From: Perkinsus chesapeaki ATCC PRA-425
Lineage: Eukaryota > Protista > Perkinsozoa
Length of the DNA: 45,961 nucleotides
Direction of reading: 5' to 3'
Assembly (NCBI GenBank): GCA_013115145.1
Contig: JAAPAO010000260.1
Coordinates: 1 to 45,961, forward strand
Shown piece after piece: positions 12,953 through 40,736 of this stretch. The notes below the pieces were generated by a model. It was not told the origin of the DNA and did not search any database. It saw only the letters and a list, made by a program, of their open reading frames with translations. Position 1 is the first letter of the stretch. The number at the start of each line of letters is the position of its first letter. Made by a program: the position numbers and the translations under genes.

Positions 12953-13015
12953 GTTGTTTCGTAGACCCACGATATGGAATCGGGCACAGGTTCGACACCC
13001 GGTAGCAACATTTTT
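12953..13015 (+). pseudogene. Degenerate tRNA-like relic (Val-like ends) between the divergent DHHC and CARNMT1 starts
   Basis: GGTTCGACACC B-box at 12989-12999, 3' end TAGCAAC-A at 13010 then TTTTT. 5' GTTGTTT pairs 6/7 with it. Only 58 nt, with no proper D or anticodon arm. Confidence 0.4.
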
Positions 13016-13086
13016 CCAATATTTTTTTCGTTTTCGACCTCCCCGACAAAACAGCACATATAATTGGTGTAGATTGGTTTATTCCA

Positions 13087-16000
13087 ATGGCCCCGGGGCG
13101 ATCAAACAACAAGAAGAAGAACGCTCATAATAAGAGGGGAAAAAATAAACCGACGTAGGGACAAAAAAGATATTTTTGAGGTCGACTTGAGGTCATGTGA
13201 GAAACAAGCATTTTGTCTTCCTTCTTGAATTAATCCCAAATCTTGTAATTTGTTCCATTGTACAACTCAGGCATCACGTTGAGGAGCCTGGCTCACCAGG
13301 AGAGGGCCGGTCGCCGCTCGATCCTGAGGAATATGCCGAAGAAAAGAGACATTTTAACGAAGTCGTATGGAGCTTCGAAACGTAATAAAAAAGATGCATT
13401 TTATATAGCGCTGTTGAAGGGCAGATATGGTGATGATTTTGAGATGGAACTCAACGCTTTGGAGACGAGTCTCATGTCATTAAATGATGAGGAACTTGAG
13501 CTGTAGGCAGGAGAGCTCCATCGACCTCAAAGATACGCTTGCTAGGTGGGGCGGTAACCCTGAACAGTACATGAAGGACATTCGGGAGAGGATGGCCGTG
13601 AATCAACGCGTAGGATCGGTTCATGATCTAATAGACACTCTCCTTTACAGGTATGTCATTTACTGTCTGAAGTGTCCACTCAAATGTTCGGTGATACCAC
13701 GCCTCGGGCGGCAGCTAGAGCGATTAAGCCTCCTAAAGGTGATAGTAGGGACGGGGGGTGGGGAGGAGGATCTTAGGGGTTAGTGAAATACAGGGGAGTC
13801 ATGGAAGAGACCTTACAGGACTAATTATACTCTAGAACCTCCATTGTCATCCGCGGATCGTGGAAGGATGTCGGCTACCTGGAAGTATTTACTGTAGTTT
13901 GCAGCAGTTTGTGGAGATTCTTATTAATGGCGAGGTTTAGATCTTCCTATTTAGTGTTATTACTGCACAGCTTATGTTATCCAAGCTTAGAATCAGTAGC
14001 GGCTTTCTGAGGGCGAATCTTCGGACATAAATTTGTCTAGATCAACCATGGGCTTGAGGGGCATCCAGATACTCGTTCGATATTCCAAAAGGGTTCTGAA
14101 GAGGGTGTTAGGGAACAGAGGGGCAAGGTGTTATTTCTATGCTCGTACAGGTTATCAATCGCAACCTCGGAACATATCTAAAGTTAGATCGACCCTCCGG
14201 CAATTTGTGAGGGAATGGTCAGTGGAGGGAGAAAAGGAGAGAAGTCAATGTTTTAACCCTGTTATTGATGCTCTCAAACGGTGGGCTCTATACAAGCTTA
14301 TGAGTATCGTACTCGCTCCAACCTAAGATACGTCCCAGCTGGTGGGAGAGTAATTGTTCCTGGATGTGGAATGGGCAGGAGCGTGCTTGAAGTTTGCGCG
14401 GCGGGCTATGAGGCCATTGGAAATGAATTCTCGTAAGCGACCTTGAAAAGTATCTTCTTGGATCGACCTCAGATACCATATGTTGATCGCATCAAGTTTA
14501 ATGTTAAATGTTGGTCTCGATAAGTTTAGTATGCTAGTGTATCCATATCTCATGAGTCTGGGAGGTCGAAGGGGGAAAGATGACCATTTACGGGGAATAC
14601 AGGTAGTATTAGTGGAGTGCCATAATTTAGCTAAAAATTTATTGAGTTCGAAAATTAATGTCCTAAAAAGCGCCATGGTAAGGACAAGGCTGGTTTTAGT
14701 AGAGACTTCTGGTACTATTATTATAACTGATAATGGTTGTGCCGTGTTATAATATTCGTGGGCATAATGGAGCTTTTATCGATGGAAGCTGAACTGGTGT
14801 GTTTTACTGGTATTTAAAAGTCCTCGAGAAATAAAGTATGGGTTAAGTTCTTCGTTAGCATTATGGATATCTCGAGTAAAAAAATCTTAGCTTGAAGTGG
14901 AGATGATACATAGAAGCTCGGATACTCGTTCTCATCTTTACTCCAAGGTACCCGATGTCTCAGCTTATGAGATGGCCTGTAACACGACAGGGTCCATGGG
15001 AATGACAGCTGGGGAGTTTGTAGAGGTAGTATGGTGGAAACTGCATGATGACTATAGTGCCCTTCGAACCTATTGCTTATGTAGAGAAGCCTAGAGAACG
15101 TATCTGGGCTTATTTGCGGCTTTATGAACAATAACTTATTTTGCAAAAAGTTTATTATGAGTAGTATTATTATTGTAATATATTATCTGTCGGCTCCTTA
15201 TGAATTAATAAGTACTAATTCATTGGTTTAAATTTAAGTGTTAGTTCACCAGTGCCCCATAAAAGTATCCAAGGTTGTTCCGTCGAAAATGAAGTCCGTG
15301 GAATATTTTAACAATAATTCCATGCCAGGAGAGTTCCTATACAAAATTATAGGTTGATCTGAGCCGTAGTTAACAGGTTGAGCCATACGCATGAATTTGG
15401 GTCTTTAGATTCCGCGTACTGTATAAAGTTATTACTTTATATTTATAAGTGTAAATTTTTTAATTCGGAGAATTATATATATGATTAATAATATAATAGT
15501 TTCTTTTTGAAGATACTTCGGTAACCCTCTATGGCTCACTCGACAGTAGCTATGCCGTGTGGACTTGCCAACTGTACGTTCTTTCAGACCTTTTGTGGAC
15601 ATGAACACCTTAATGCATGGGATGCAGTAGCGTCCATCTTTTTTATCGATACTGCTAAGAACGTTGTCCAGTAAGGTCCGAGGTTCCTACATGCTCGACA
15701 TGTGGGGCGTCAGGTACATTCGAATACTCGCCCATTGCATTAAACCAGGAGGGGTATTCATTAATATAGGACCGCTACTTTGGCACTTTGCTGAGAGCAA
15801 AAATGATATAAGTATTGAACTGAGTTGGGAGGATGTAATGATTGGGCGAGGAGGGGGTAGCATCGTCGTTAATTTCGGATAACGTTAGAGTAGCTCGGAG
15901 AATTGATGCGGAGTAGTGATACAGGAGTCGCTACTGAGTAAGCGCCGCACCTAGGTTGGACATGGGAAGTGATCCGTGTATCGCTGGGAAATAGGTTATA

Positions 16001-16601
16001 ACTGAATTACGTTGAATCTATCGCAACCCGGTTCAAATTCACACCGTGGTCTTCGCGAGGTGTATTAGGTAGCTATTAACTAGGTGTATGATGCTCGAAA
16101 ACCATAACTGGATTCTATGCTATGGTGGCCTATGAACTGGTCAGTAGTTCCGCCTGCCAACCCACACACCCGGGTTCGAACCCGGCAGGCAGCATCTCAG
16201 ACTGGCATGAGGCATTTGTGGACACCGCTAGGAAGCTTGATATATTCTATATCTTGGCGCACAAGCGGAATAGTGTTGGATCGTGCTGTGAATATTAATC
16301 GCGGGTTCGATTCTAGGTGCGGCAACTTTTGGAGGTTTATTTCGATATAGTTGAGGAGAAAAGATTAGATGCCAACTATGCGAGCAACCTGGACAGTTTG
16401 TCTGAGGTAGGTGAATTTCTCGCGCGCCGCGAAATTAGTCCTTACCATCAGAGCCTGTTTCATTGCATCTTCTACGTGGCCCGGCGGAATAATCGTCCTG
16501 TTGAGGGCGAATCAAACTCGGTATACATATTTGACGAGCTCGAGGAGCGGCAGCGTCGACAAGAAGCTGGAGGGGGGAGCGGAGCTGCGTCTCACAATTG
16601 A
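13087..16601 (+). CDS. CARNMT1: Carnosine N-methyltransferase / N2227-like SAM methyltransferase, multi-exon
   Basis: KVRSTLRQFVREWSVEG, RVIVPGCGMGR (SAM motif I), GNEFS-YHMLIASSLMLN, MTAGEFVEV, WDAVASIFFIDTAKNV, KPGGVFINIGPLLWHF, IELSWEDVRQLL and SLFHCIFYVARR, all in family order. Confidence 0.93.
16119..16194 (+). pseudogene. Degenerate full-length tRNA-Gly(GCC)-like sequence in a CARNMT1 intron
   Basis: 76 nt GCTATGGTGGCCTATGAACTGG...CGCCTGCCA...CCCGGGTTCGAACCCGGCAGGCAGCA. Has an A-box-like segment, a GCC anticodon in CCTGCCA and a B-box. Acceptor and anticodon stems do not pair well. Confidence 0.55.
16421..16436 (-). other. Intronic AATTTCG(C)GGCGCGCG motif copy
   Basis: CGCGCGCCGCGAAATT inside the 45-nt intron 16407-16451; one mismatch to the copies at 21554 and 22573. 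Confidence 0.7.
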
Positions 16602-16881
16602 TGCTGTGTTCTACAATTACTCGGTTTCCATCGTATTAGGGTTCTTGTGTGCTTTGGGGGAAATGGTTATTAGCTGGCTCAATGGTGGGTGAAGCTTCGG
16701 GAGGAATCGTCAGCAGAAATTGACGGTTAACTTCAAATTTATAAGTTTATATGATTTGGGTTTATTCGGACATTCGCCAAGAAGCTTCGGTTATAACATT
16801 CGGTCATACCTAAACTTACGGTTTTTCTATCAGTTTTGTCTGTGACGCTTGAAGGTAGTTGATTTTGCTTGAAACAACAAC

Positions 16882-19549
16882 ATGTTGTATAAGTGGTCCT
16901 TGTTATTGAGCATAAGTTGTGTGGTGGTATCTAGTGCGGACAGTGTACTTAGCAGCTATCCTGTACAGCACTGTGTTGATGGGGATAAATGTGTTAACCG
17001 TGGAGTTATTAAAGTAGATGAAGGAAAGGTAATAAAGGGCTTAGGATGTGAATAGTTCTTCACTAGACCCGCTGTTGTCCATTCTGAGCCTGTGTTGGGG
17101 AGGTTAGACTTCGGTGAAATTTTGCACAATTCTTGAGGGTTTCGTTTGAATTGTTTCGCAAGAGGTGCGAGGGGACGTCAAAACAAAGGGGAAAGTCCTG
17201 GGTTATATTTGGTAGCGATCGAGCTCTATGATGAAAAATAAATCGGGAGGCGAAGCTGAGTTGTATGGAGTAGTACCTGACTTGTCGCGGCGATGAGGAA
17301 ACTCCAGGCGTGCCCGGAGCGAGGATTGATGGGCAACTTGGAGGGGGGGCAACTTTGCATTGGACAGTTGGCTGGAGAAAGCGTGTCTGCGTAGGTTGGA
17401 ATTTATATAACGTATTTGAATGTGCCAGGTGTCCTTACAACAGAACTCTGAGTACTTAAGGAAGTATGGCCCACTTCTGAGGGACAAGGTGCTAAATAAG
17501 GAAAATCTCGGTAGGAGGTTAGCGGAGCGAAGCGAAGATATTATTATATTTTGAAGGTGATGATTCTCTAGTGGAGCTTAGAGTGTTCTATGATGAGGGG
17601 AAGTATGTCCAGAGCAGTATTCCTGTGAAGGTAGTAAGGGATGGAGGACCTGGTTTATTATAGCTTTGATCGACGGTACTAGTATTATATGGAATAGGCA
17701 TCGAGTCACGGTTTGAATGTGCTATTGGCAACGGAACCCGATCCCAGAGAGGTGTGGGTGCTGGTAAATAGCTTGGCAAGCACGGCCATGTCATTCACAG
17801 TGTAAAAGTTTAAAGCACAGTATTACAGTTTACATCTGGTGTATACATGTTGTGGATACATGTTTACCAGTAGATATTTCACACTGTAGTGTCTTAAGGA
17901 TTCTCACTTTGATGGATGACCGATAATCTTTCCATGATTTTGAAGCTTGTATGATTTTATGGCGCTGTTATTAGGTGTTCCGTGAGACCTTGCAGACCCC
18001 AACGATAGGAGCTAGCAGTACTAGTTTAGCGGCTAAATCGGCCAGTCTTACTGAACATATTACACTACACTTGGATGACGAGGGACGGTTGGAGTCTGTT
18101 GGTTATCGAGTTAGGAAGACAGTAAGTGGGGGGATGGTCTGACCATGTGAGCTGCGACTTTAACGTGTAGGAGGATAAAATTGGAATCTAAGATGTCTCG
18201 GGCATGTTTTGTATGATTGTTCTGAAGGCTTGTACTCGGTTTAAAGTGGCTGATATAGTAAGCGACATGAGGTATCGATTCAATACCTGTCAACAATGTT
18301 GAAATTTGGTACTTGAGGAAATGATGCGAAATTTCACGAAGTTTTCCGGCATTGTTCTCGCTCTTCACCATCCGGTACACGTGACGTATTTTTGGACATG
18401 CAATCGGGACTGTTGGTGGGATTGAATCATGCATCAACTTGAGGCACGAAGCTGTCGGAACTTGTCACTTTCCGGAGCATTGATACGCTGTATTGAGAAA
18501 GCGTTGCTGTCGAGGATGTTTTCTATTTTCAGCTCGGTGCCCCATTGTTCCAAGTTAGTACTGCTACGTTACACTCTATGACTGTTACTAAAGGGCCAGC
18601 CATCCCAGTCCCTAAGAAGAGAGTACCTAAGGCTGCTGCTCAGTCAGGTAGCTACATTGCTCTACTATTATTTTCTGAATCCCCGTAGTTGGCTCTATCG
18701 GATAGTGTGATTAGTTTTTTGTAAGGATCTTTCTCATCTCAGCAGCCTCATCGGAACCTAGCCATGCGCACTGTTAATAGGGTCTCCCAGTTGCTATACA
18801 GTACCATATAACACGTTAAACTCCTTGGCGTTTGGAGTTCATTAGGTAATTTACTAATTGTAAATTAGTCTTTGTGGGATAATATTAGCAATTTCACGAA
18901 TAAGAACATGAACTTGTGGTGCATGGTGGAGCAATAACTGTGTGCATTCGTGTGTTCGACGAAGATACTTTTATAAGCATCAGACTGCTCTAAATTCCGA
19001 GTTGGGGTTTTGTTGCACCAGTGTCCCGGTCTATCCCCAACTGACATGGTAGGAACTTTTCGCCGAGCCAATTCTCTGTAGATATCTACTACTCACGGTT
19101 GGTTGGTTTTTTCAGTGTCAAACGTTCTTATGAGAATTGCTCAAAATGTATACTTGGTCCAAGTTAGACTCGCCTTCAAAGTTCATTGATGTGCTGGTCA
19201 GGTGCCAATCGATCCGGTAGCAACGAAAGTGAGCAAGCGGCAGCCAGCCAGGCCACACAGCTTGAGGAAGGCGAATATGAGGTTGAAGAGAAGCCTGAGA
19301 CTGAGCAAGGCTTCCTAAGAAAATACGTAGGAGCTCAATGTAGCTTTTATAAGGTGGATGATGCCGGTGGTTGTTTTCTCAGTGGTGGGTACTCCTTATA
19401 TTCTTCCTGTTATCATCGGCAATGGGCCAGGAAGAGGGTAAGGATTTTATGGCAGAATTGCGCAGTGGAGATCTACTGTGTTATCAGATCCTAAGCAGGC
19501 GGCTGCTGGAGCTGGCGGGGCTGCCAAGGGTGGCAATGGTGGGAAGTAA
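16882..19549 (+). CDS. EMC10: ER membrane protein complex subunit 10-like, multi-exon
   Basis: Signal peptide MLYKWSLLLSISCVVVSSA, then H...NRGVI, LTEHITLHLDDEGRLESVGY, TVTKGPAIP and the C-terminal EQGFLRKYWWVLLIFFLLSSAMG with a Gly/Ala tail. This matches EMC10 architecture (family motif SFFAKYWMYI). Confidence 0.8.
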
Positions 19550-20175
19550 GGTGCCTTATTAGTTGTATTCACTTCCTTCTTCATTAATGCCTCTTTGTTG
19601 AGTTACGGAATGGTGTCTCTATGGGATTGACATTGGCAACTCTCGGTAGGATGTTCAATGCTGTTGTGTGCACGGTATAGTTACTTGAGATATTACAATC
19701 GTACCTAATCGTTATAGTATTCCTAAGGTGTTTGCTCTGCGTTGTATGTTCTATTAGGCAGTGTAACAAACTCACATTTGGAATCACTTCAGGGCATCCT
19801 CTCGAAAATGTGTTCCCCCACAAGCTTATAGCGATTGCCCATTATAGACGTCTTGCTTATTACACTATGTGTTCTACGGGTTGTCGGGCATTTTAGAATA
19901 GAAGGTGTTTCAGATCGCCACGAGTGATTTTGGCCACTCAGTAGGGTGGCGGCGTGCCAAAGAATAAGGAGTAACCTTTCGGGCAGTTCGTAATGTTGAT
20001 ATTAACATGGCTTTTATTGCTCGAAGTGTTTACTGGCCTCTGAATAGGTGAAGTCAGTTTTAACGTTATGAAAGCCACTTGTAGAGGCTTCTCTGGGATA
20101 TATTTCCTTTTTTACTTACATTAATGTTATTGTCATCCTTTAATTGTATGTTTAATCGTTGTAGTTATATCCAGT

Positions 20176-22099
20176 ATGTTTTATATATTGATTTGTACAT
20201 TGGGCACTGTAGCCTTGATAGCATGCTCACTGCTGATGTTAATGCAAGCATTGGCGAATCTAATGAGGGGGGTGTTGCATCTAGAGCCCGGCGATGAAGT
20301 TGACGTAAGTAGTTCGAGCAGTAGAAGCCGTGCTTCATTCGCCCTCATTCGATATCGCAAACTGGTGGCTTATCAACTCCGATTACATCTTGATAGCCCA
20401 ATGAAACGATGCATAGCGTTCGAGCCGCAAGGCCTGTCTATTGGTTCAAGTGGTAACTACCGACAGTCAGCCCGAGATCCAGACGGAGTTAGCCCTTTGC
20501 CCAGATCCAGGTGTTCAATAAATTGGTGACCTATCAGCGCCGAATACGTCCGGATTTGTGATTGAGAGCCCAACAAAATCTCACTTTCATCGGGAGGTAT
20601 ATTCTCTTCACGAGTGCTGCTGTTCAGATAATCCTCACTGGAGCGTCGGGAGGAGTTGGCCACGCCATTCTTGACGAACTACTGTCTAGTCAATGTAGAT
20701 ATGTGGGGAATTTCGTGGCGCAGTGACGGTTGTCAGGTCGAATCCATCCTCGTAGAATTCATGCATGGGACATTGAAATGCATGATAAGAAGGATGACAC
20801 TGTCGAGTTGATGAGCGCTAATACTAAGATTACATACCGACAAGTTGATATAACAGATGAGAAGGCTGTGAGAGAGGGAGTGGAGGCAGTGGTGAAGTCA
20901 GGTGCAAAGAAGGTAGGCTAATTGCGGAGTTGGCAAAGCATGGTGTGGGTCAGTAGCTTCTTCGTCAGCAGCACTCGAATTGACCGGTATCCTTGTCCTT
21001 GATCGATAGGTCCTCTACCGAGGTCTCAAGGTCCTTGAGAACTTCCACTTTGTTAAGTTACCGGATGATTCCCTGACTTTCCGGGCGGCTCTTTGTCAAT
21101 GTGGTATACGTCATTTCTTTACTTTAATTTTCTTCTCTACAACTTACAGTACCAAAAATTGCTTCCGGGTATTTGTACCGGATCCGTAATACGGATAGGA
21201 AATGCACTGTTAGCCACCCTAGCAGGAAGTCATCGTCATTAATGCGGTCTTTTCCCTCTTCAGACCATTGTCATCTGCAATGCTGGAGTTCTCCATGCTG
21301 GATTAACTGAGGAGATATCTCATACCAACTTTCTCAATACACTTGATGTAGGTATACCCCTCTTAACTGCTGCTCATGCTCACGGTCAGGTCAATGCGGC
21401 ATCTCATCAGCTTTTGTACTCTTTATTCCTTCAACAGTCCCTCAGCGACTCCAACCCCTTCGAGCTTGTATCATTCGTTTCTATATCTAGCGCCATGGCC
21501 TTCTCAGCGAGCGCGTTCCTCTCTGCGTATTGCGCATCCAAGTAGGGCTGCTCAATTTCGTGGCGCGCGGTAATTGTATTTGATGTCAGGGCCGCATTGG
21601 TGACACTTCACCAATGCATGAGATTGGAGAATCGGCAGCAGAAGCATCCGGTGCGACTTTCCGTAGTGTGTCCATTTTTGGTTAGAGACAGCCCGGTAAG
21701 ACAGAAGACCAGAACCGGAGGACTTTCACCGCTGATGTTGTTGACTTAGATGTTTCAAGGTGCCTTTGCACATCCTACCTTAACAGAGAGATTAGTATTG
21801 TTTTTATGTCCACCTTTGGATTGTAGTTACGTTGCTAAGGCTATTGTGAATGAGGCGATCATCAACGGCAAGGAGGTACCTTGCGGCTTGCTGTCCGAGT
21901 TGCGCGTGCGTGCATAGTGTGGTGACAGGTATTGTGTCTCCCTCGATGGCCATTGGCATTTGCATTACTGATGTCGGCATTGTTGCCCACTGAGGTCTAT
22001 GACTGGGTAACTGCTGTGTCTGGCGGACAAGTCGGTATGGTTGGTGTGATGTCGAAGGCGAAAGTCCAGAAAGGAGAAGAGTCGATTAAGGAGGACTAG
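20176..22099 (+). CDS. Short-chain dehydrogenase/reductase with N-terminal membrane anchor, multi-exon
   Basis: IILTGASGGVG (TGxxxGxG), QVDITD, ICNAGV and AYCASK (YxxxK), with a hydrophobic N-terminus MFYILICTLGTVALIACSLLML. Confidence 0.9.
20709..20721 (+). other. Intronic AATTTCGTGGCGC motif copy
   Basis: Exact 13-mer in the 42-nt SDR intron 20695-20736. Confidence 0.7.
21554..21569 (+). other. Intronic AATTTCGTGGCGCGCG motif copy
   Basis: 16-mer in the 48-nt SDR intron 21542-21589, which splits YCASK|AALV. Confidence 0.7.
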
Positions 22100-22492
22100 A
22101 TGTCTCTAATATATTCTTCAAGATAACAGCAACACAACAGAGTCGAGTTTTGCACTGTGACAGACTTACAGTGTCACAAAGTCTCGTGGCGTGCAAGTGC
22201 TCTGCCATGGAAACATAGCGACTGCGCAAGACTGTTTTTTCTGAGTTAGAGAGGACTTTTATTAAAGCAAGGTGTTGCTTTTAGCCGAAATTGTGGTGAA
22301 TTTCCCTTCTATTGTCATCACCTATGTGTTCCTTCATACAGTTAGCACTTTGAAGCCTGATGATCAGGGAAGATTGGAATCAATATCATGACCACGGTCC
22401 TCCGTGACCATCATAACATCCTCATGTGATTCTCCACTCCACTCTACAGCACAGCTGCTACTTAGGGTTTTTTGTGCTCACTTCCCGTCAAT

Positions 22493-24038
22493 ATGTCAGT
22501 TAACCCATCTCTCGAGCTTGTTAGGAAAAACCGTTCCTTCGCGGGTACGTAGTACTAACGAGCCTGGTTTGTCGCGCGCCACGAAATTGTTAGGAACTAC
22601 CTACCGATTCAAGCATCAGTCTGAGTGTCTGGGAGGACTCGATGCGACCTTTTCTATCTTCATACCGGATTCGGCTACACCGAGCCACAAGGTGAGAGCC
22701 GACAAGTGCCGCAGCTGGGAATCGAACCTGCTCAGGTCCCCCTGGTGCACTATCTGTCTGGCCTTACCTGCTCTGATCTTAACGTCACTGAGAAGGCTGG
22801 TAAGACATCAGCTTGTACTTTCCTTTGATACTTGATTCTCTGACCAGGCTACCAGCGTGTAGCATCGGCGCTGGGATTGGCTATTGCCTGCCCTGATACG
22901 TCACCAAGAGGTAGGTCTGTAGGAGTTAGTTGACAGCAGCGTGCTCTTTTCTATACGAAGTTGATTAGTACGTAGTATAGTATAGGTGGTTGTTAAAGAT
23001 GCTGTGGCCTACTGTGTCGAGTAGGTGTTGACTCTTATACCATTCGAAATCCCGCAGTTTCAAAAAAATAGGGGGTGATCCTCAGTCTAATGGATGCCCT
23101 GTTTATGAGGGATAATAAAAGTGTGAACGGATATAGTGTATCATATTATTTCGCCGCCCCAGTCAACAACTATTTATAGCTCGCTTCTTATAGGTGCCGG
23201 CATCCCTGGTGAAGCTGATGAGTGGGACTTTGGCGTCGGTGCTGGTTACTATGTGGACGCCACGCAGGAGCCATGGAGTAAAAACTACAACATGTCAGGA
23301 CTTAGCAGCTTTGTCACGAAATTCACCCCGTTGCACCCTTCACAGGTACACCTACGTCACCGAGGAGTTCCCTCAGCTTTTGAAGGCGAGCTTCGAGCAG
23401 ATCGACGCGGGCAACTGCAGCGTTATGGGCCACAGTGTGGGAGGCCATGGCTCATTGACTGTGGCGTTGAGCAATCCTGGAAAATACAAGGTAGCTTCCG
23501 ACACGAGCATGATGCCAGTTTGTTCTCTTCAGTGCGCCTCTGCCTTCGCTCCGGCATGCAACCTCAGCGAGACACCATGGTGAGGGGGAAGTGTGTGGAT
23601 TCATACGAGTGATGATGTTGGCTTTAGGGGAACTAAGGCGTTTGGTCGCTTCTTTGGCGACAACAAGGGAGAGTGGAAGAAACACGACGCTTGCTGTCTG
23701 GCGGAGAAGTATTCAGGTGAGTAGAGTGGTATAGTCGATGCGCTGTAGGGGATTGGCTGTTGCAGGCCCAAAGCTGGACATTAAGATTGATGTGGGCTCC
23801 GAAGACGATCAGTATTTGAAGGCCCCTGTGGACCAGCTAAGATGCCGTGAATTCAGTCAAGTTGCTGAAGGGAATCCTAACATCACCTTGGACTTCAACG
23901 AGAGGGTGAGCTGCCGACTTCATCCCGTCGGGTGTTAGTTGTTGTTCATCTCAGGCCGGATATGATCACTCTTACTTCTTTGTGTCAACCTTTATTGAAG
24001 ACCAGTTGAGATTTCATGCTGAGCATCTCCTTAAGTAG
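22493..24038 (+). CDS. ESD: S-formylglutathione hydrolase / esterase D, multi-exon
   Basis: [50 protein letters not shown] (nucleophile Ser), [13 protein letters not shown] (Asp) and [21 protein letters not shown] (His). Confidence 0.97.
22573..22588 (-). other. Intronic AATTTCGTGGCGCGCG motif copy (reverse)
   Basis: CGCGCGCCACGAAATT in the 49-nt ESD intron 22545-22593. Confidence 0.7.
22707..22733 (-). pseudogene. tRNA 3'-end relic, antisense, inside the 44-nt ESD intron 22692-22735
   Basis: Reverse strand reads GAGCAGG-TTCGATT-CCCAG-CTGCGGC-A: a B-box followed by canonical 5+7+1 spacing ending in GGCA. Confidence 0.55.
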
Positions 24039-24742
24039 ATGATTGATTGCTGCTTAGTGGCATTATCAGTGTTATAGACTCTTCTAAATGTTTCCTTTGA
24101 GTCCCTGTAGAGTTGGCTGCTGCTGCTGCCATTGGGGGGCTGAGGCCGCTGCACGGTGGTAGAATTTGCGTCATTGATCCTGAAGTCGACAATCCCATCG
24201 TTCCCCGTGTTCATTGGAATCGGTTCCAGCAACGCATTTTACGTGCAAAAGTAGTTCTGGAATCGACTCCGAATCGGTTTATTGATCGACGATGGGTAGC
24301 TGTAGGCATTTTATTGCTGTAGCAACCCTTGGAGTGAGGGAATCCTGACACTCACCCGGGGACTCCCCGTGAAAATGCGGTGCTTGATTCGGTCGTTGCC
24401 GACGGTGCGAGAAAGCCTACCGTCGAATCCAGCGGGGAGGACACAACGGAAGTTTCCCTGAGTCAAGGGCCTTGACACGTCTCTCAAAGGGGGCATCGCC
24501 AAATGTCACGTGCGAAGGTGAAGTGCTGAGTGTAAAATCTGATTGAAAAAACGTATTTCTATGAATTAGCTAGAGTCAAAGCCGGTTGCGCCTTCACAGC
24601 AAGTGATCGAGGTGGGGGGGGGGGAATTCTTGAATACTACACGGCAAATGCGACCGCTTACATTGTGTAATACAAGGAGCCATAAAAGAGCCGCATGAAC
24701 TGTAGAAGCAGCAGCGAACTTGACATAACTTCTGAGTGACAT
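24014..24742 (-). CDS. Hypothetical multi-exon protein with N-terminal hydrophobic segment
   Basis: [27 protein letters not shown] followed by a GTAAGC donor; a later exon reads [30 protein letters not shown]. The 3' end is unresolved. Confidence 0.35.
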
Positions 24743-24940
24743 AATCTTATTAATCGACAACACTTTCTGAGGTTGGAGGAATCTCAGCCTCAAAGCATCA
24801 GATACTTGAAGGACGTTCGGGGTTTTCTAAAGAGCGATACACTCCTCTGTATCTCTCTACAAGATCGGTATGCAGTTTGCTGGTTGAGACGGAGAAGGAC
24901 ATGCCCTTACAGAAGAAGCTTATTATAATTCCTGCTGCCC

Positions 24941-30528: not shown

Positions 30529-31200
30529 TTGCGGCTGTGCAACTACCTTGTATGCTTCAGTAGTTCAACGTCTTAGCAGAATCATGCAGCATGATTCATG
30601 CTGAGAAAAAAACACCCTGCTGTCGAGAACAACGCTTCGAATCAACGCTAAAATGGGCGGTGGTTGAGAATCAATTTCTTGCGGAAACGACAAGATTTCT
30701 CCTTTTTAGGGCTCTCGGCGGCCTCTAGGCTCTCGGAAAGCGGACGGGTAGGTTTATTGTGACTTAGCCGATCGGGCGAGTTCCTGCTACTTAGGATCGT
30801 CCTTGGGTGCTCGGTAACTCGACCATAAGATCCTCGCCAATGTCTGCAGTGGAGTGAGACCTAAGCAATGAAAGAAGCAGCACGTTTCCAAACCACGATG
30901 ATCGCTTTGGTTCTTTCAATTCGGCACCCCTCCCTTTACACGGCAGTTTTGAGTGTACTAAGCACTGTTCCATCGCGGAGCTATCGATTGACGTGGGAGC
31001 CGTCTCACCACATGGCTACGTTGCTGAAATGTCCTTTTTCAGTCGAACTGTATCTTTTGTAGGCCTCTTTGTCTCACCTTATGCTTTTGCAATGAGACTA
31101 CGATCAGCAGCACCTGAGGTCATTCTACACTACCGATAGTGTTATTACTTTATTCAGGCAATAATAATAACAACACCTCCTCGACCAGAGGAATACCCCA

Positions 31201-31747
31201 CATGGACGGCCATCGCTCTCACGTGGTTAGCTTTCTTCACAGTGGCCTTCGGATTAGCGTAGGTTACAAACAAACTAGACTCGGAATCTCTTTTCGACCC
31301 ACAAAAAAACGAAACCGTTATTTCCGGGTCGGGCCATGTGGGTCGGCTTTAACGCAACCTGTCGAGTACTCAACCATCGATTGAATTCTTCACGGAGCCG
31401 ACTTCGTGGGATATTCAGACTCCTTCCGTAATGCTCCTTTCGATATAGGGTATGCTAGGAGGCAGCAGCCCCTGGTGGTAGATACCTCCTGATGTGGTAC
31501 CGGCAACGTAAACACGAAAAGTCGGTCGAGCGTCATCAAAAGATATTGGAGAAACAGCGACTGAAGCGCGCTTCGCTGGACGCTTGTAGGTGACCGATGT
31601 CGATGTGGTCCTACTGTTTTGTGGTTCAGTGATGAAAGCTGCGGAAGCTGGTGAAGTGCCACAGCGCAAGAAAGAGAGAAAGTCGAAGATAGGAGGGACG
31701 CGGAGGGAAAGGGACGATGACCATAGTCCTGAGAAGGCATCCAGGAG
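31201..31747 (+). CDS. Hypothetical basic/coiled-coil multi-exon protein (may extend to ~32520)
   Basis: Exons SFRNAPFDIG|YLLMWYRQRKHEKSVERHQKILEKQRLKRASLDA and VMKAAEAGEVPQRKKERKSK...SPEKASRR with GT-AG boundaries. Confidence 0.4.
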
Positions 31748-32669
31748 GGTAAGTGCCAGATATGGAGGACCATCACAATAGCCTTTTAACTTACGAGAAT
31801 ACTGCGACGCATATAATCTTCAATATATAAGAAGTGGAATTCACGCTTACGATGCTTAACGTTATCATAATGAACATGTGAAGGTGAAATAATTGAAAAT
31901 TGCGTATGTCGGAAAATATAACGAGAAAAGTGGTTGCTAGTAATGTATTGGCAACACATTATTACACTGGCTACGTAACACAGTCTTGCGCAGTGCATAA
32001 CGTATATGTATCCTTATAGTCATGTAATCTCGCTGGATGATCTTATAGATATATATATTATAAGTTGTTAAGACGATGTTATGTAAACTACTCACACGTT
32101 TACATGCATACTGGGTAAATGTATTTATATTTGCAAATATACAGTATTGTAATGTATTTTATTCGTCACTTGTTTTTATGCGCCCATCTTGATATTAGAC
32201 AAAGCGTTTAATCTGTAACTAGCATCATGGCGTCACTTGCTAGCGACTCGTGCGTACAGATTCTAGCTCATCATCACCAAGGACCTGACAAGGAGCATCA
32301 CAAGCACAATCGACGGAAGGTGAAAGAACGCAGTAGGCCGACTCACCTTTCACCATCCCTCTCACCATCTGCGGCTCGCACTAGCGCTGAGGAGCGAAGT
32401 AAGTCGGCACCCGCTGGCCGTGGCGTTCCTATTTGCTCTCGTGGGCTCAGGTCGATCTCCTACCTCTGGTGGCAAAACGCGGAAGAGCAAGCTGCTCGGC
32501 CATCATTAATTAGGCGGAGCGAAGCATTTAATAATTACGTGTCGGCCCTTTGTTGTTATTACGGAGTCTTGCGTTATAAGAAAGGTGCCAATATTAATAA
32601 CAGATTGCTTTGGGGCGTGATATGATATTTTTGAATGTCAAGTGGACAGGTGGTGCTGCTGTCAGTTTT

Positions 32670-33440
32670 ATGTCTGATATTGAATCCCCCTGCTCTCCTC
32701 CCTCTCCAACAGCTACCACTACTGACTCCACGACTGAGATGCCCTCCACCTCTGATAGTGTCCAGAGCGCCTCAATGGGTTGGGGCCAACAGCTCAAGCG
32801 ATGGTTCAATCTTAATTTTATCCTGCCCGCTAGAAGCCTTCAAAAAATAGATTTGGCGTCGGCTGTTTTACTAGGTATGTCAAATGCATGCTTCGAGCTT
32901 AGATCCTCTCCTCAGGCCTGTGGTTTGGTATCTTCCCTATACCTGGAACAAGTACGGCTCTGCTCGGTGCATTCTTGGTTATATTCCGCCGAAGTCGCTG
33001 GACCAAGTGGTGTAGGCTCCTACCTCCTGTCCCCTTTTGTGTCGCCATCACTTCTCTCTTAGGTCCGAATGCTCCTCAGTCTACTATAGCCTTTGGGGTT
33101 AATCTTCTCTGCACCCCCCTATGCATCGCCCTTATACCAGCCTGGCTGAGGATAGGTGAGTATCTGAAACGGCTCGCCAAAGGTAACCTCCTTCCCAGGT
33201 GGTTTGGTGTCACCGCCAAGGTTCGTCGGTTGCCATCCAGATTCTATCGTGTCTGCCATTAAAGCCAGTGACGGTCTCCTAGCTGTCCTTCGTGCCCTTC
33301 AGACCTTCGCCTCGTGCATAGGTCTTTGTATAATCGTATACCTAGCTTTCACTCCAGTAGTTGCCCTTATGTGGTGGTTCATGTTGAGGCCTCAAGGCAG
33401 CGCCAGGCTGCCGGTTCTGGGACCGCAATCTCGAGAATGA
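32670..33440 (+). CDS. DUF2062-like multi-pass membrane protein, multi-exon
   Basis: IDLASAVLLG, AFGVNLLCTPLCIALIPAWLRIGE and a C-terminal TM IGLCIIVYLAFTPVVALMWWFML resemble the DUF2062 pattern as I recall it. Confidence 0.55.
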
Positions 33441-33561
33441 GTCGAGCCTTGCAGAGTTCGGGTGCGACTCATTTAAGATATTTTTTGAAAACATCTTGTT
33501 CGACTTTCAATTCGGTCGGGTCCAGGTGAGCGTGCTTCTTTCTTTTGTTTTCAATCCCACA

Positions 33562-35892
33562 ATGCCGGGCCGAAAGCTCATCGTCAAAGGGCGAGCGCCG
33601 AGTCCTGCTGTAATTCAGAGGCGACAGGAGGCTGCGGCGGCAAGGGCAGAGTTCGAGGCCTTGAAGAACGAGAAGACCCTGGTGAAGATTCGATGGGAGC
33701 ATAAGCCAGGGAAGATGCTCTGGGGTAGGCCTCCTGTGTGCCTCCGCGCTCGGCAGCTGTCGTCAGTCTCCTCCAATTGCTTCAAGGACCATGTCTTGTC
33801 CACTCCAGAGCGACCGGCCTTCTATCTGGGCCCCATGCCGGGCTTCTTCAACGGTGACATCATGCAAGTGGTAAGGATTTGCCCCTATGACATTCTTTTC
33901 TGCATCCTGCGGAGGTGTGCTCGGAGCTGCGGAAATACAGTTAGAAATTCGCTCGAAAATAAGTTCAAAAAATAAGGTGTCGTATTCCCTCGGGGAGCCA
34001 CTGATGCCCCTATATGGCAGGTACAGTCGGTATCGGTCCATCCAGGTCTGCATCCAACATTGAGGCCCAACAAGCTCCTTCCACCACCAAAAGTTAAAGT
34101 GCTTCCGTGCATCGATGATGGACAGCAGAAGGTGCAGTATCCACTACTGCCTGCAACCGAGGTCGAACATGATAATAATGATGTAGCGTTGAGAAATCGT
34201 AAGGAGGATCAAGTGAGGCAAGATTCTCCTAGTGACGAGGCCCTGGCTTACGCCTTCCGTCAAAAGTTGCGTGGTATCACCGCTGACGGCCTTGAGGTGC
34301 TTGCCGGGCGAATGCAAGATCGGTCGGACCTTCCACCGGTGCTGTGGAGGGTGCTGGCCCGGTACGTGGGGCGGAGGTGCCCTGAGCTCCCTTTGCCGAC
34401 CTTGGACTACCTTCTTGCCACTGACATGTCCCTCTACTGTGAAGACTGGCATTTGATAAGGTCCGGTCTGGAGGTCCACCTCAGGGAGTTTGCTCGGTGT
34501 CCGGAGAGTGAGTTCGGTCTGGCGGGCCATCTGCTGCTGTTGAAGATGTTGCACAGGGTACCCAGGAAAGTTGCAGCAGGTTTGGCGCTGCCTTTGGGTA
34601 ATTTCCTGGCGCGCGCCGTTCCTCTCATGGACAGTCGAACGCTCGGAGAAGCGTGTAGATTACTGCTGCCTCTGAGTCGGTATGGAGTTGCTGAAGGTTG
34701 GTGGAATGCAGCCGCTGTTAAGATGGCGTCTTTGGGCCCGACCGAGGCAACAGTGACCAAGATTCAGGGCCTACTGGAGACCGGTGAACTCAGCAAGAGC
34801 AGTCGGAAGTTCCTTGGGGAAATGTTACGGGACTCTGTGTCCCTCGAGTCACGAGAAGACCCCCTCCTCAGCGCCCTCGCCGAGCCTCCTGCCCTCGCCC
34901 CACCAGCTCCCAGTGATCCAATAGAGCCAGCAGACTCTGGCGCGGAGCCCGTGTCTGATGACCTGCTGGTGAGGAGCCCGAGGGCAGCCCGCCAAGCTGA
35001 ATTACTATGTTCCACTTTGCCCAAGTATCCCGTGTATCCGCTATCATCCACCCCAATCCTCTGGCACCTTTCCCCGGCCCACTGCAGCCGTGCTGTGTTC
35101 GACCTGACCGCTCATAAGGTAGCTTACCGCCTTACCCTCCCCTCCAGTGGATCTTGTGTCAGTTGGCGTTGGTCATACGCTCAGCCGCTGCCGACAGCTG
35201 TGGACTGGCATTCCGCCAAAGACATCGAGGCCTGCCAGGAAGGCTCACTGATCGTGCTAAGGCAGAGGACTTTGCCGGACTTCTGGCCACCGCCGCTTGC
35301 TCCCGAGTATTTTGGCAGGCGCCATTGGGGCCTATCGTTGGTGGTCAGGTTGATCGATTCTCCCACCGCGATCTCTGTATAGTAATTCAAGCCCTGGGAT
35401 CCTTCTACCGTACACGACTCCTCTCGGAGGCAGAGGTCAGATCGGTCTTAGAACCAGCGTTGTCGAGGCTTATGACCAACGATGCCGTAAAGCGTACTCT
35501 ACCGGTGGACCTGGCTAGGGTGGTGTCTGGCGTCAAGTAGGAGAGGCCTTCGTGGCGGTCTTCCAGTGATATTGTTCAGGTATCTTCCAGACTCACCATG
35601 GCGGAGTGGTATCATTGCAGGCCTCGAGCGACATACCGTGTACCTCTTTAGCTTGCCTTACACAGTCCCCCTAAGAGAGGCCATCCCTTCCAGTGCACTA
35701 GTGTCCTACTGCGTGTCCTGGAGCAGTATGAGGGGAGATGGCAGAGCTTTAAGGCTTCTGGCCAACCATCTACCGAAGAGGAAAGCAGACCTCGGTGCCG
35801 GAGAGTGGACTCGGTGCGTGCAGGCTCTTGCCAAGGGTCGACGACTCCGGATGAGGCGAAGGCTTGAGAGACGCCTTACTAGAGTGCAGTGA
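33562..35892 (+). CDS. Large alpha-helical repeat protein (HPR/OPR/RAP-family-like), multi-exon
   Basis: A ~350-codon exon from ~34060 plus later exons with Leu/Ala-rich helix pairs (MDSRTLGEACRLLLPL, FSHRDLCIVIQALGSF, PSSALVSYCVSWSSM). A basic N-terminus (MPGRKLIVKGRAPSP). No clear RAP domain seen. Confidence 0.6.
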
Positions 35893-36174
35893 TCATGTTT
35901 CTGCTTAAACGTCGTTTCCTATATCCTTCGGCTCTTGAGCCTCCCTGGATGCCGGCTCTGATAGTTACATCTGATGTTGGCCCGTGTTAATGTCGGCAAC
36001 CTACGGCTTAGTGCTTGGCGAGCTCCATCGAGGTTGATGGCCACTGTAGGATTCTCATCAGTTCCAGAGACTCCCAGCGAGAGGCGAAGGCGCAGAAGGC
36101 TCAGGACCACCGAGGACATGGAACTGTGAGAACAACCGCAAGGCAAACTTTGATGGAAGTAGCTGATGGTTAGG

Positions 36175-36473
36175 ATGGACACTAAGGAGAAGCTGAAGTG
36201 GGCCGCCACTGTGGTGGTGGCAACCTTCCTTCCACTCTACGTTATGTACCGTTCTGCTGCTACCACGTCGGCCAAGCACGTAAGGTGACGACTTGCTGGT
36301 GAAGTGATGTCGACTTTCAGACGGAACAGCTTGCCATGCAAGAGGCGGCTGAGCGACGGGAATGGCTGCGCTTGGCATCGGTTCACGAGAAGGCGGAACA
36401 GAAGTACTCAGCAGATCCGGAGGAGAGAGCTAAGGGAGAGGCTGTGTTGGCAAAACATGGACAGACCCTATAG
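36175..36473 (+). CDS. Small single-TM hypothetical protein (two exons)
   Basis: MDTKEKLKWAATVVVATFLPLYVMYRSAATTSAK|..DFQTEQLAMQEAAERREWLRLASVHEKAEQKYSADPEERAKGEAVLAKHGQTL*. Confidence 0.5.
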
Positions 36474-36484
36474 TTTCTGTAAAC

Positions 36485-36644
36485 AATTACCATTGTTATT
36501 GTGTTACACTATAAGGTTTAATTACCATTGTTATTGTGTTACACTATAAGGCTTAATTACCATTGTTATTGTGTTACACTATGAGGTTTGATTACCATTG
36601 TTATTGTGTTACACTATAAGGTTTAATTACCATTGTTATTGTGT
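36485..36644. repeat. 35-bp minisatellite, ~4.6 copies, between convergent gene ends
   Basis: Unit AATTACCATTGTTATTGTGTTACACTATAAGGTTT at 36485, 36520, 36555, 36590 and a partial copy at 36625. Confidence 0.95.
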
Positions 36645-36703
36645 AATAGTATAAAGACAAAACCTACACATTTGGGAGAAAATTAATTAGTCGATCATGA
36701 AGG

Positions 36704-37136
36704 TCATCGGTCATCCACAGAAAGATCATTTGACGAGGTCTGAGAGGGCATGCTGTGGCACCACGCGAGGCCATCGTCTCCACCTTGCTGGCCAGATCCT
36801 GAATGTTCCTCTCGAGCTCATCAACACGATTGGTCATCTCATCGATGCGCCCAACAATGGTATCGGACATGCTTTGAAACCGGGTTTGCTAAAGGCCGCT
36901 TCCATCACAACACACAAAGGCTCTCACCATCTCCTTAAGCAGATTCGATACGAACGCCGTGAGCTCCTGATTGGACTGCTCCGCGACTGATGTCTCTTGG
37001 GAGCTTGTCGAAGAGGGAACTTCGGCACCTGAGTGTCATTGAGGGCTCATATGGCTATATCGGATATACCTCCCCGTTCGACAGAGTACCCCGCGTTGGC
37101 CTTGATACTGCCACTACTGGTACGAACGTCCGCCAT
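36704..37136 (-). CDS. HSBP1: Heat shock factor binding protein 1, four exons
   Basis: ELTAFVSNLLKEM|QTRFQSMSDTIVGRIDEMTNRVDELERNIQDL matches the HSBP1 coiled-coil signature ([28 protein letters not shown]). Confidence 0.92.
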
Positions 37137-37371
37137 TAATGAGTACTAAGAACCCTGGCAGTAGCGGACAAGCGACGCGTGCTTCTAGCTGGGACAAGCC
37201 TTAGGTTGGAGGGCAGCAGAGTGGAAGGATGAGCACTGTCAGCCGGGCAAAAGGGTATCGACATATCGATAAATCGATTAAGATTCGACCTATTCTCATT
37301 ATTAATTAGATCATCATTATGCAACATTCAACGTATGGGAGAGTGCTTGTCGCCGACTCGAACGACTTAAA

Positions 37372-38080
37372 TCATTCGGAAGGCAAAGATTCTCTCCTAC
37401 TTATGGCAGCGTAGTAGACCATCGACGACCACCAGGAGAACGAGGAGGTTAAATCCACTGCCTCGACCATTATTAGTTGCTCCATCAGTACCCCTGCGCA
37501 GCTGGAGGCGCCCAAGTGTAATAATGGCGACCTCCAGCTATCATGCTGCAGACAGGCCACAGTCAATGGGCGCTAATATCATCACAGTGAGCAGCAGCAT
37601 CAGCATTATCATAATCATTCAGACACAGCCAAAGAATTGTTCAATCCGCACACCCTCTACGAGGACTCAGCAGAATACTGTCAATAATTCTTGTATCATC
37701 ATTAATTGCATTATTAAAGGCATCAGATTCAACCTTATAACTTCATAGATACCTCTGCGGTGGTAATAGCAAGAAGATGGGTTGGATCATCATTGCCACT
37801 GTACCGTCAGTCCGTACAAATTAGGCCGATATAGCGTAATCGATCTCGGAAGCCGGCGCAAGATACTTGGAGGTCATCTAGCGCTCGCCGTCTTAATCGA
37901 TATGGGTGTGCGTCGCGCCTGAGTGACATGTCGGCTTCTTGGTGGGGATGCTGGCAATTCTTCACCATATTTCCGTCCCAGGAACTTGGTGTGGGTACGG
38001 CAGTGGAACTTTAAAAACACTGTGGTTTGCCCAATAACCGTTCGTATATCGGCCAAGACTGGGTTGTACGGCGGCACATG
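37372..38080 (-). CDS. Possible hypothetical multi-exon gene
   Basis: Several short open segments with splice-like boundaries (HCRTHTKFLGRKY, RDAHPYRLRRRALDDLQ, GNDDPTHLLAITTAE). Could not be assembled confidently. Confidence 0.25.
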
Positions 38081-38280
38081 CGTGATAAGGATTATGGCCT
38101 CAATAATGACCGTTTTAGGGCTTAGAGGGGAAGGGCGTTAAAGATACGCCAATGTTTGAAATAATTTACCAGACAACAGCTTGTAGGAGGTTGAATTTTG
38201 GATAGAGCTGCTAAGTGGGCAAGGGGACATCGGGAATCTTTCCGGTATCAGTGGTAGTGTTGATTATTAAACTGAGGTGA

Positions 38281-40637
38281 ATGTCCGTTCCACCAAGCAA
38301 CACTGATAAGGCAGAGGAGGGCAATACCAATAGACAGGAGGACCAAGAGGAGGAGATCTACATCAACCCTGATGATTGTATAGACCTTGGCGAAGGCATT
38401 GATGATTCAGCTGAGGTAGTATGAATGAAGCATGCATCAACCAAAGATACCGCAGGTGGCGGCTGATGAGAGGGCAGGGGTAAATAATGATCTATTGGAG
38501 GCAGCTGAAGAGGAGGAAGAACAGGACAACTGCTCCATTACCTATCCCTTTACAGACGCTGCATTAAGCCTGGCAGCAAACCCTAAGGATCATACACTCG
38601 TGGCTGTGGTAGCAATTATACCATATTTCCATCACAAATGCCTATGAATAGGGTCTTCAAAATGACACTGCTGAGCTGCTTCGGATTAGGCCGGGCTCCG
38701 TAGAGCCTTTAAGGATTCTCAGAGGTAGTTTGGCGTCTGTGGTATCATCCGTACTGGTGGGTTCAGGGCACACTGATAGCGTAGTGTCGGTAGCCTTCAG
38801 CTTTGACGGTGAGCTCCTGGCCACAGGCAGCTACGATGGCACTGTAAGGATATGGGAAATGGCCAAGTTGATGGCCGAAACTGGAGGTAGTAATATCTCT
38901 ATCCGGAACACCATCGGCCTGGTCAGATTGCACAACGTCGATGCTGACGCTGGAGGGTCCTGGGGAGGGTGTCGAATGGGTCTCATGGCACCCTAAAGGC
39001 CATGCCGTCTGTGCTGGCAGTCAGGACGGTACGGCGTGGATGTGGTGGGCTGGTAAGGCCAGTGGAGGCGGTAATGTGATGCAGGTATCTCTATAGGGGC
39101 GACTAGAGATCAAAGAGGGTTCGGTCAGGTATTCGCTGGGGCGCATGGCTCTTCGGTGAACTGCGGCAGCTTCTCGATAGACGGCAAGGCTGTAGTGACG
39201 GCTGGGCTGGACGGCGTAGTGGCTGTGTGGAACCCTAGGACAGGTAGAAATGTCGGAGGGGGGAATCGAACCAGGGACCTTTGGATAGGTGCGACTGCGG
39301 CGTCCTGTAGGACTAATGAGGAGGAGCTGCAGAGGAGCCAGCGACAAAGGCAGGTGGACGGTGATGTTGACATGGAAGAGGAGGTTCCAGGTGAGATGCT
39401 TGGCTGTGGCGCGCGGGAAAGATCCGTGTTGGGTCAGAAGGAGGCATTGTATCGATGGCTTTGATGCCACCAGAGGCGGGCAGCAGTCCAGTTGCCCTTG
39501 TCGGCACGATCGATGGTGACGTGAAGGTAATGCGGATGCAGGTTCGATCCCTGGCCAGGGCATCTATTCTGTTTCAGTTGGTTCAGTTGGAAACTGGGAA
39601 GCTTCTGGGCAAACTCCGCGGCTCCTCTGACGTCCAGATAGCCGGCCAACCACTGTCCGCCACAGACGGCAACAACAGTGCCTCGACTGAGGACGCTTAT
39701 AGCGTGGAGGCCTTGGGCTTCAGTGTGCCGGCAACCACTGGGTCAGGGGCGCAGCCGACACCTATATTACTGGCTGCTGGGGACCTGAAGGGCAAGCTGC
39801 TCATTTATGAGGCATCAAAGTTATTGGCGAGAGGGGTAGTAAAGCTGGAGGGGATAGGGTTTAACACACCTACATAGGAAAATAATAATCTGGCCTAGCA
39901 TCTTGATGTCGCTTCTTCAAGATATTTTTGAGGTTGATTGGACGGAATGCGTAATAAAATTAGGCAGAGTTAGCGTTGTGATCACGCATGGGCCTGCTGC
40001 CGCTGGGGCGTGACCACGAGAAGCTATCGAAAGCGGTGGTAGTGCTTTAACAGCTCTGGTCACTAACGATGGCTCTCGTAGGGTTTGAAGTTAGGTTTGG
40101 GTTAGACGAGGGTCATTATAAATTCCACATTGGGCTGATAAACAGGCGAGTGATGCACCACAATCTGAGGAGCGACTGTATATAGTAATTATTACTACCT
40201 AAATCACTTAACCATAGATCACTTACAAAATTTGTGCTCGTGGCGGCAGGTCCCTGCCGATAGGCTATGCTCAACATGCCCCTATCTCCTGTTTCTGCGG
40301 AAGTATCACATTATTGTCCTTAGTCGGGTCCTCGCCATCAAGTGTCACTGTCATCCGGTGCCACACGCTTAGCTTGGCATCCTCATGGTCTCCCTGTAGT
40401 AGCTGTGGGCCAAACTGATGGTGTCGTAGAGGTTATCAATGGTCTTACTGGGGAGGTATTGTCGAAGTGTCTCGGCCATCAGGAACAGATCTTGGATGTA
40501 GGCAGCTGCAGTGGTCGATGTTGGCATGTCTGGTTTAGGTATTATGCGTCCCTGGCTTCGAGGAGGGCTGGTTCCGAGTCGTCTCTGCTGGGGACGATAA
40601 CTGTATAAAGATATTCGACCTGCAGGTTATGACCTGA
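38281..40637 (+). CDS. AAMP: WD40 protein AAMP/Sqt1 (uL16 chaperone)-like, multi-exon
   Basis: Acidic N-terminus, then GHTDSVVSVAFSFDGELLATGSYDGTVRIW, TLEGPGEGVEWVSWHPKGHAVCAGSQDGTAWMW, FAGAHGSSVNCGSFSIDGKAVVTAGLDG, LAWHPHGLPVV, GHQEQILD and VVSAGDDNCIKIF. Confidence 0.88.
39251..39286 (-). pseudogene. tRNA 3'-half relic, antisense, filling the 45-nt AAMP intron 39244-39288
   Basis: Reverse strand ATCCAAAGGTCCCTGG-TTCGATT-CCCCC-CTCCGAC-A-TTT: canonical AGGTC variable loop, B-box and 5+7+1 spacing. Closely resembles the eukaryotic tRNA-Phe 3' half (ATCTAAAGGTCCCTGGTTCGAT...). Confidence 0.65.
39535..39562 (+). pseudogene. tRNA 3'-end relic, sense, inside the 51-nt AAMP intron 39527-39577
   Basis: GATGCAGG-TTCGATC-CCTGG-CCAGGGC-A: T-stem pairs 4/5, with canonical spacing ending in GGCA. 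Confidence 0.6.
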
Positions 40638-40736
40638 GCATTGCGCTATTTACCAACGTACAGCTGTTTCACCAACTCCTCCGACTGGCGTTCACCGGGG
40701 CTCCGCTCATCGTCAGTTTATTTAATCGCCTTTGCG

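Follow-up and report, generated by a model that had tools for sequence, protein, structure and literature searches.

Why does the B box of transfer RNA (tRNA) genes recur in a stretch of protist DNA that appears to hold no tRNA gene? The question is raised by a contig of Perkinsus chesapeaki ATCC PRA-425 (JAAPAO010000260.1), which we analyzed over its full 45,961 nt (the window). An earlier note on this DNA had described five B boxes as relics of tRNA 3' ends, four of them in introns. B boxes are known to be read by TFIIIC. We found more B boxes in the window than expected by chance, and those that we could compare between lineages were conserved. We suggest, with about an even chance of being right, that they are old remnants of the 3' ends of tRNA genes whose B box has been kept as a DNA site. 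The site would most likely serve TFIIIC without a tRNA, much as at the 'extra TFIIIC' (ETC) sites.

B boxes are in excess and are followed by CA at tRNA-like spacing

We found that the B-box pattern GGTTCGANNCC is over-represented in the window. It matched at five distinct places on the two strands (12989+, 16173+, 22718-22728(-), 39262-39272(-) and 39541+), versus 0.25 expected, and 100 dinucleotide-preserving shuffles of the window gave at most 2 matches. The match at 16173+ was also scored at 16172- because the core of the motif is palindromic. The five sites are those listed in the earlier note, which had expected about 0.35.

The spacing of these copies is that of a tRNA. The B box followed by nine nucleotides and CA (B-box-N9-CA) was found 5 times in the window, versus 0.03 expected. 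All five exact copies (5/5) have this arrangement, and therefore CA stands at tRNA positions 72-73 in each of them, as had been claimed. The description of their ends was also correct: CCA follows none of the five, and the trailers are T- or pyrimidine-rich.

All five copies were real, and two degenerate ones had been missed. Allowing one mismatch in the B box gave 11 matches versus 7.5 expected, and most of the extra matches were noise. Two of them (16304+ and 44670+) are genuine relatives, bringing the window to seven copies, or about one per 6.6 kb. The copy at 16304+ shares the end TGCGGCA with the copy at 22728, and that at 44670+ has a fully paired T stem. A profile hidden Markov model built from the copies recovered these seven and had no further match in the window.

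We found no tRNA gene in the window, either with ARAGORN (0 calls) or with Rfam (0 at the gathering score). The earlier note had proposed aligning the copies to the Rfam tRNA model (RF00005). This model had no match at E<=10 in the whole window, and none at E<=10 in slices of 150-260 nt around 12989 and around 16173/16304. The copies thus cannot be classed as recognizable tRNA pseudogenes, since the model scores none of them, in the window or in the short slices.

Conservation in three lineages is confined to the B box, whatever its orientation

We compared the window with two further lineages. The protein matches of the window genes were to Perkinsus olseni, which was represented by L002, L003 and L005, with L126 as a second haplotype (93% identical). 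The third lineage came from run SRR12548988 (L001 and L004). In this orthologous DNA, the nucleotide identity of exons to the window was about 65-84%.

Two of the copies, relics A and B (Table 1), are in coding introns of an AAMP/SQT1-like WD40 gene (window 38281-40640, ten introns). Reading frames alone cannot prove these two introns because both are multiples of three without in-frame stops. We reconstructed the precise exons of the annotated P. olseni protein P0005 on L005 and aligned this gene in the three lineages. Under this exact gene model, window introns 39244-39288 and 39527-39577 match annotated P. olseni introns. A WD40 repeat ends at 39243, directly before the relic A intron, and removal of 39527-39577 restores what is, by eye, a WD-repeat-like stretch (...GTIDGDVK/LVQLETGKLL..., the slash marking the junction). 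The control intron between the two is demanded by the reading frame (frame shift 0 to 2).

We found that the introns of this gene are old, because all ten positions (10/10) are common to the window, P. olseni (L005) and the third lineage (L004). One check that had been proposed was whether the orthologous genes of sister species lack the relic introns; for the AAMP-like gene they do not, as the introns are present in both P. olseni and the third lineage. When window 38422-42076 was compared with L001 (5067-5682), the AAMP-like gene was wholly absent at the syntenic spot of L001; it was present in L004, from the same run. L001 and L004 may represent two haplotypes, paralogous segments or mixed strains.

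We found that little besides the B box has been kept in the relic introns. In the relic A intron, the 12-nt sequence GGGAATCGAACC was invariant in the three-way alignment. In the relic B intron, GGTTCRATYCC was kept, the orthologues reading GGTTCAATTCC in P. olseni and GGTTCGATCCC in the third lineage. In contrast, the longest internal run identical in all three lineages was 3 nt in eight relic-free introns, in which 51/221 ungapped columns were identical. Relic C was kept in the window, L001 and L005, in noncoding sequence that is otherwise unalignable. The only difference in the second P. olseni haplotype was at position 60, which is one of the two N letters free to vary.

The pattern of change was also that of a B box. 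Among 16 copies (the seven in the window and nine orthologous ones), G53, T54, T55, C56, A58 and C61 were invariant, and changes were found only at positions 52, 57 (G/A), 59, 60 and 62. The same positions vary among real tRNAs and B boxes. C72 was kept in 13/15 copies and A73 in 10/15, although the nine bases between the B box and CA differ. Within the AAMP-like gene, conserved copies are present in both sense and antisense orientation.

These results largely refute neutral debris as the full explanation. In that account, the short introns were created or filled by the insertion of pieces of tRNA genes or of mobile elements derived from tRNA, such as a short interspersed nuclear element (SINE) or an introner, and the pieces have no function today. 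The relics do take up most of each 41-61 nt intron, L005 has a full tRNA gene within the range of a gene (see below), and Perkinsus has many tRNA genes and tRNA-targeting Dada transposons (PMC3706591). However, three lineages have orthologous copies with the B box intact while other intron interiors are scrambled. The copies have nothing in common beyond the core and CA, and we saw no target-site duplications, terminal repeats, A box or tail (intron-end repeats and A box judged by eye). The sole intron that varies in presence or absence, 43379-43418, carries no relic. We consider this explanation very improbable. The related idea in the earlier note, that tRNA fragments seed new introns, has no support for recent times, as the relic introns are common to the three lineages and the lineage-variable intron is relic-free. 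This 40-nt intron is in the window and P. olseni (L005) and absent from L001.

The motif might instead act in RNA, an option of the earlier note. An element resembling a T loop, in the pre-mRNA or in the intron after excision, would be seen by tRNA enzymes or cut into a small RNA. We measured T-stem pairing and found that the outer three pairs were complementary in 21/48 cases over all copies and 8/21 in the window copies, versus 37.5% expected by chance. Pairing at this level indicates that no hairpin is maintained. Only relic C is fully paired in the T stem; there, the G52-C62 pair of L001 is A52-T62 in the window, which keeps the pair and would suit an RNA role. This is a single case, and compensatory change was rejected as a general pattern. 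Sense copies end in CA, a T-rich run and AG, so the trailer of the relic doubles as the 3' splice region, which might also fit a function in RNA. In contrast, the conserved copies change orientation from one intron to the next, and the 5' acceptor strand is absent, so that no minihelix can form. Given also the chance level of pairing, we regard an RNA-level role as quite improbable.

A tRNA-like B box could also be kept without selection on the site, by repeated gene conversion from native tRNA genes. There are many potential donors, and the motif equals the T loop region of a native tRNA-Lys. However, conversion tracts would restore the T stem and acceptor as well, whereas the conserved stretch ends abruptly with the 11-mer and the T stem does not pair. 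In addition, the letters at N59 and N60 differ between lineages in the same intron. Gene conversion thus appears extremely improbable.

Our results are most consistent with a site in double-stranded DNA, because a short motif is kept in either orientation, its variable positions are those of a tRNA B box, and there is no RNA pairing. The remnants would consist of the T arm with the B box, the 3' strand of the acceptor ending in CA, and a T-rich trailer. They would lie in the noncoding DNA of a compact genome, in mini-introns and beside coding sequence, the rest of the tRNA having decayed beyond recognition. Purifying selection would hold the 11-bp B box as a double-stranded site, and TFIIIC would be its most likely reader, without a functional tRNA gene, as at ETC sites. 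Since the B box is unchanged across three lineages, in tiny introns and beside genes, it is probably still bound by a protein, most likely TFIIIC. The putative TFIIIC site could serve as a landmark for chromatin or transcription, such as a boundary, a roadblock for RNA polymerase II (Pol II) or a loading site. Retained TFIIIC (ETC-like) sites had been one of the options in the earlier note, and this option fits best, with only the B box surviving, in either orientation, and substitutions at tRNA-variable positions.

Several points weigh against this interpretation. A pure B-box model does not demand the retention of C72 and A73. A TFIIIC complex in a transcribed intron is expected to hinder Pol II. 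The comparison between lineages covers three of the seven copies (relics A, B and C) and few lineages, and the relic-free introns that serve as the neutral control are 40-60 nt long, so that their alignment is crude. Finally, the proposed tRNA origin is based on short features: the Rfam tRNA model scores no copy and the T stem is unpaired.

Surroundings of the seven copies

We found that no copy is in coding sequence (0/7), and the earlier statement that none is in a confidently coding exon holds. Of the four copies said to be intronic, those in 39244-39288 and 39527-39577 (relics A and B) are verified coding-intronic. The copies at 12989, 16173 and 22728 have candidate contexts only. Nor are the copies confined to introns. 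It is plausible that each of the five copies other than relics A and B, all of which adjoin coding sequence, lies within a candidate GT..AG mini-intron or outron.

Table 1. Positions of the B-box copies and of the control intron in the window (UTR, untranslated region)
Feature	Position	Strand	Description
Relic 1	12989..13010	+	B box GGTTCGACACC; CA at 13009-13010, then T5 and T7 runs
Relic 2	16173..16194	+	B box within a 16-nt perfect palindrome, CCGGGTTCGAACCCGG; CA at 16193-16194
Relic 3	16304..16326	+	GGTTCGATTCT; degenerate copy; TGCGGCA end as in relic 4
Relic 4	22707..22728	-	GGTTCGATTCC..CTGCGGCA
Relic A	B box 39262-39272; CA 39251-39252	-	Antisense in 45-nt coding intron 39244..39288(+) of the AAMP/SQT1-like WD40 gene
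Control intron	39391..39437	+	47 nt, between the two relic introns; no B box, no conserved interior
Relic B	B box 39541-39551; CA 39561-39562	+	CA followed by TCTATTCTGTTTCAG; sense in 51-nt coding intron 39527..39577 of the AAMP/SQT1-like gene
Relic C	44670-44682	+	GAGTTCGATCCTC; degenerate copy; 5/5 T stem; candidate 41-nt 3'-UTR mini-intron 44658..44698

Relics 1 and 2 are associated with a carnosine-methyltransferase-like gene. Relic 1 is ~80 nt 5' of its ATG (13090, read from sequence). A possible splice acceptor AG (13071-13072) stands 3' of relic 1, making the region a candidate outron; the hint of an exon or intron here is one RNA contig with a 14-nt loose end. A candidate last intron of that gene (16145-16200, 56 nt, GTAGTT..CTCAG), proposed from reading frames only, contains relic 2. 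The exon upstream of relic 2 had a Pfam match to CARME, and the presumed last exon after it (16203-16295) had no Pfam match. Relic 3 begins 6 nt past the TAA at 16296-16298 and belongs either to the 3' UTR or to a candidate intron of 63 nt (16288-16350).

Relic 4 is ~630 nt 3' of the stop codon (22097-22099) of a short-chain-dehydrogenase-like gene, and a candidate 44-nt plus-strand intron (22692-22735, GTGAGA..CTCAG) would contain it in antisense orientation. Relic C is 16 nt after the stop TGA at 44652-44654 in the window, and in P. olseni the annotated coding sequence of L005 ends at 16019, 27 nt before that contig's relic C copy. The intron around relic C is probably a 3'-UTR mini-intron, because of the shared stop 16-27 nt upstream and the GT..AG flanks in all three lineages. 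We rejected relic C as a coding intron, as the three-way alignment shows the common stop codon just upstream.

The placement of some copies near gene ends could indicate a different reader. The 11-mer might be a site for another sequence-specific DNA-binding factor, such as a regulator of Pol II or an architectural protein peculiar to the lineage, or it might drive transcription of a short RNA by RNA polymerase III (Pol III). The limitation of conservation to a short DNA motif would be expected of such a site. So would positions ~80 nt before an ATG (12989) and 6-16 nt past stops (16304 and 44670), and the T5 and T7 runs after 12989 would terminate Pol III. However, the motif is letter for letter a tRNA B box, of which TFIIIC is the known reader, and its variable positions are tRNA-typical. 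We saw no A box (by eye, and from the failure of the tRNA model) and no conserved upstream element, and the flanks are unalignable between lineages. We consider this alternative unlikely.

Public RNA contigs are sparse (454; four tiny runs with this stretch). They covered other introns and no relic. They confirmed three unrelated introns (17027-17426, 17510-17555 and 17629-17972) and revealed a probable spliced-leader acceptor at 16857. One RNA contig begins there, and the 20 nt that hang free at its start, TCCGTAGCCATTTTGGCTCA, resemble a dinoflagellate-type spliced leader. This position is probably a trans-splice acceptor at the 5' end of the plus-strand gene with these three introns.

Intron length varies between the lineages. 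Window introns 42910-43163, 43856-44176 and ~39836-40330 are 250-500 nt long and AT-rich, versus ~40-80 nt in the other lineages.

The window contains other features. A tandem repeat at ~12250-12530, with YSTSYFASL-like units on the minus strand, is between a DHHC palmitoyltransferase gene and relic 1. There is a weak match to a C/D-box small nucleolar RNA (snoRNA) at 37716-37800(-) (SNORD87, 23.9 bits, E 2.6), with ATGATGA and CTGA boxes. The block around this snoRNA-like match (37239-37798) has 72-75% identity to P. olseni and the third lineage. A perfect 16-bp inverted-repeat hairpin, AAAAACTGACTGGGAA..TTCCCAGTCAGTTTTT, is at 3002-3042; its only matches were weak ones to microRNA families.

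Proposed tRNA ancestry and known B-box systems

An origin of the copies in the 3' ends of tRNA genes is plausible from their sequence features. The copies suggest descent from genes and not from mature tRNA because CA is at tRNA spacing (C72-A73 are 20-21 nt from G52), CCA is absent, the trailer is T-rich, and there is an AGGTC flank, similar to a variable loop, beside relic A (39272). These features and the exact B box favor the tRNA 3' origin proposed in the earlier note without proving it: the T stem is paired at chance level, and the covariance model scores no copy. As a family, the copies have neither the scoring cloverleaf nor the 5-bp T-arm stem around a TTCRANN loop that mark tRNA genes and pseudogenes.

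Potential source genes are abundant in the genus. P. marinus is reported to have >500 copies of five tRNA types (PMC3706591), and this large number of tRNA genes makes tRNA-gene 3' ancestry plausible. In P. olseni, L005 contains an intact-looking tRNA-Lys(CTT) at 19202-19276(-), followed by T5, within a called plus-strand protein gene (18959-19912). Its T loop region is identical to the motif. This tRNA within the range of a gene may be a still-living case of what the relics descend from. Dada DNA transposons (4.7-11 kb) target tRNA genes in P. marinus, and Dada-tIA duplicated the target TAGCTC (PMC3706591). The tRNA genes of the genus are thus unusually numerous and broken by insertions, but the relics here have no transposon-like sequence beside them.

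A metagenome scan with the 3' end of relic 4 (22728) found mostly bacterial contigs, in which ARAGORN called few tRNAs (Leu, Thr, Phe and Met). These matches show only that an acceptor end like that of relic 4 exists in nature, and not the source of relic 4. Some of the matches were bacterial integration sites, which, like the copies here, have a lone tRNA 3' part (T arm and acceptor strand). However, bacterial tRNA 3' ends are by-products of integration beside an intact tRNA or island; unlike the copies here, they are not intronic and are not a conserved stand-alone motif.

Among known systems, the copies are most like B-box-only TFIIIC (ETC) sites. Both have a lone consensus B box without a working tRNA gene or an A box (the latter judged here by eye and from the failure of the tRNA model), conserved between related species; for relics A, B and C, the motif is conserved in three lineages while the flanks diverge. 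Known sites of this kind are mostly intergenic and few in yeast, and Alu-borne in human. In contrast, the copies here, known from sequence alone, are in introns of 41-61 nt and right beside coding ends. In Dictyostelium, external B boxes reportedly lie downstream of tRNA genes and are attached to a live tRNA gene. They share with the copies here a B box beyond the tRNA coding body, but no tRNA gene is present in this window.

Mobile elements fit less well. tRNA-derived SINEs, like the copies here, are dispersed tRNA-related sequences with a B box in or near genes. In SINEs, a 5' tRNA head that contains both the A and the B box is followed by a body and then a tail; members of a family are similar over their full length, and their insertions are polymorphic. 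In contrast, only the 3' part is recognizable here; the copies align over the core and CA only (11 nt plus CA), and the orthologous positions of relics A-C are occupied in all lineages. Introners and introns derived from miniature inverted-repeat transposable elements (MITEs), such as those of Amoebophrya (PMC7789003), are short and, like the relic introns, consist mostly of one recurring element. Copies of introners are recent, almost the same in sequence, and have both inverted and direct repeats (PMC7789003). The relic introns are instead old, differ outside the core, are not lineage-specific, and lack inverted, direct or terminal repeats (end repeats judged by eye). In full-text literature searches, no paper turned up that deals with B boxes or remnants of tRNAs in the introns of Perkinsus.

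We tentatively propose a broader idea, which is possible but to our minds falls short of an even chance. The genome would contain a layer of thousands of conserved B-box sites without tRNAs, in mini-introns, outrons and at the edges of UTRs, recruited from the debris of tRNA genes. Through these sites, in a genome with spliced-leader trans-splicing, TFIIIC would organize chromatin or pace or halt Pol II.

TFIIIC sites consisting of a B box alone are rare genome landmarks in yeast, and in human they are carried by Alu elements. If our interpretation is true, the sites described here would be a new use of the Pol III machinery inside Pol II genes, within tiny spliceosomal introns and at coding edges, in deeply diverged species. 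They would also show clearly that debris of tRNA genes can become functional DNA elements. The idea is relevant to what fills very short introns and what constrains them, and it is directly testable in cultured Perkinsus.

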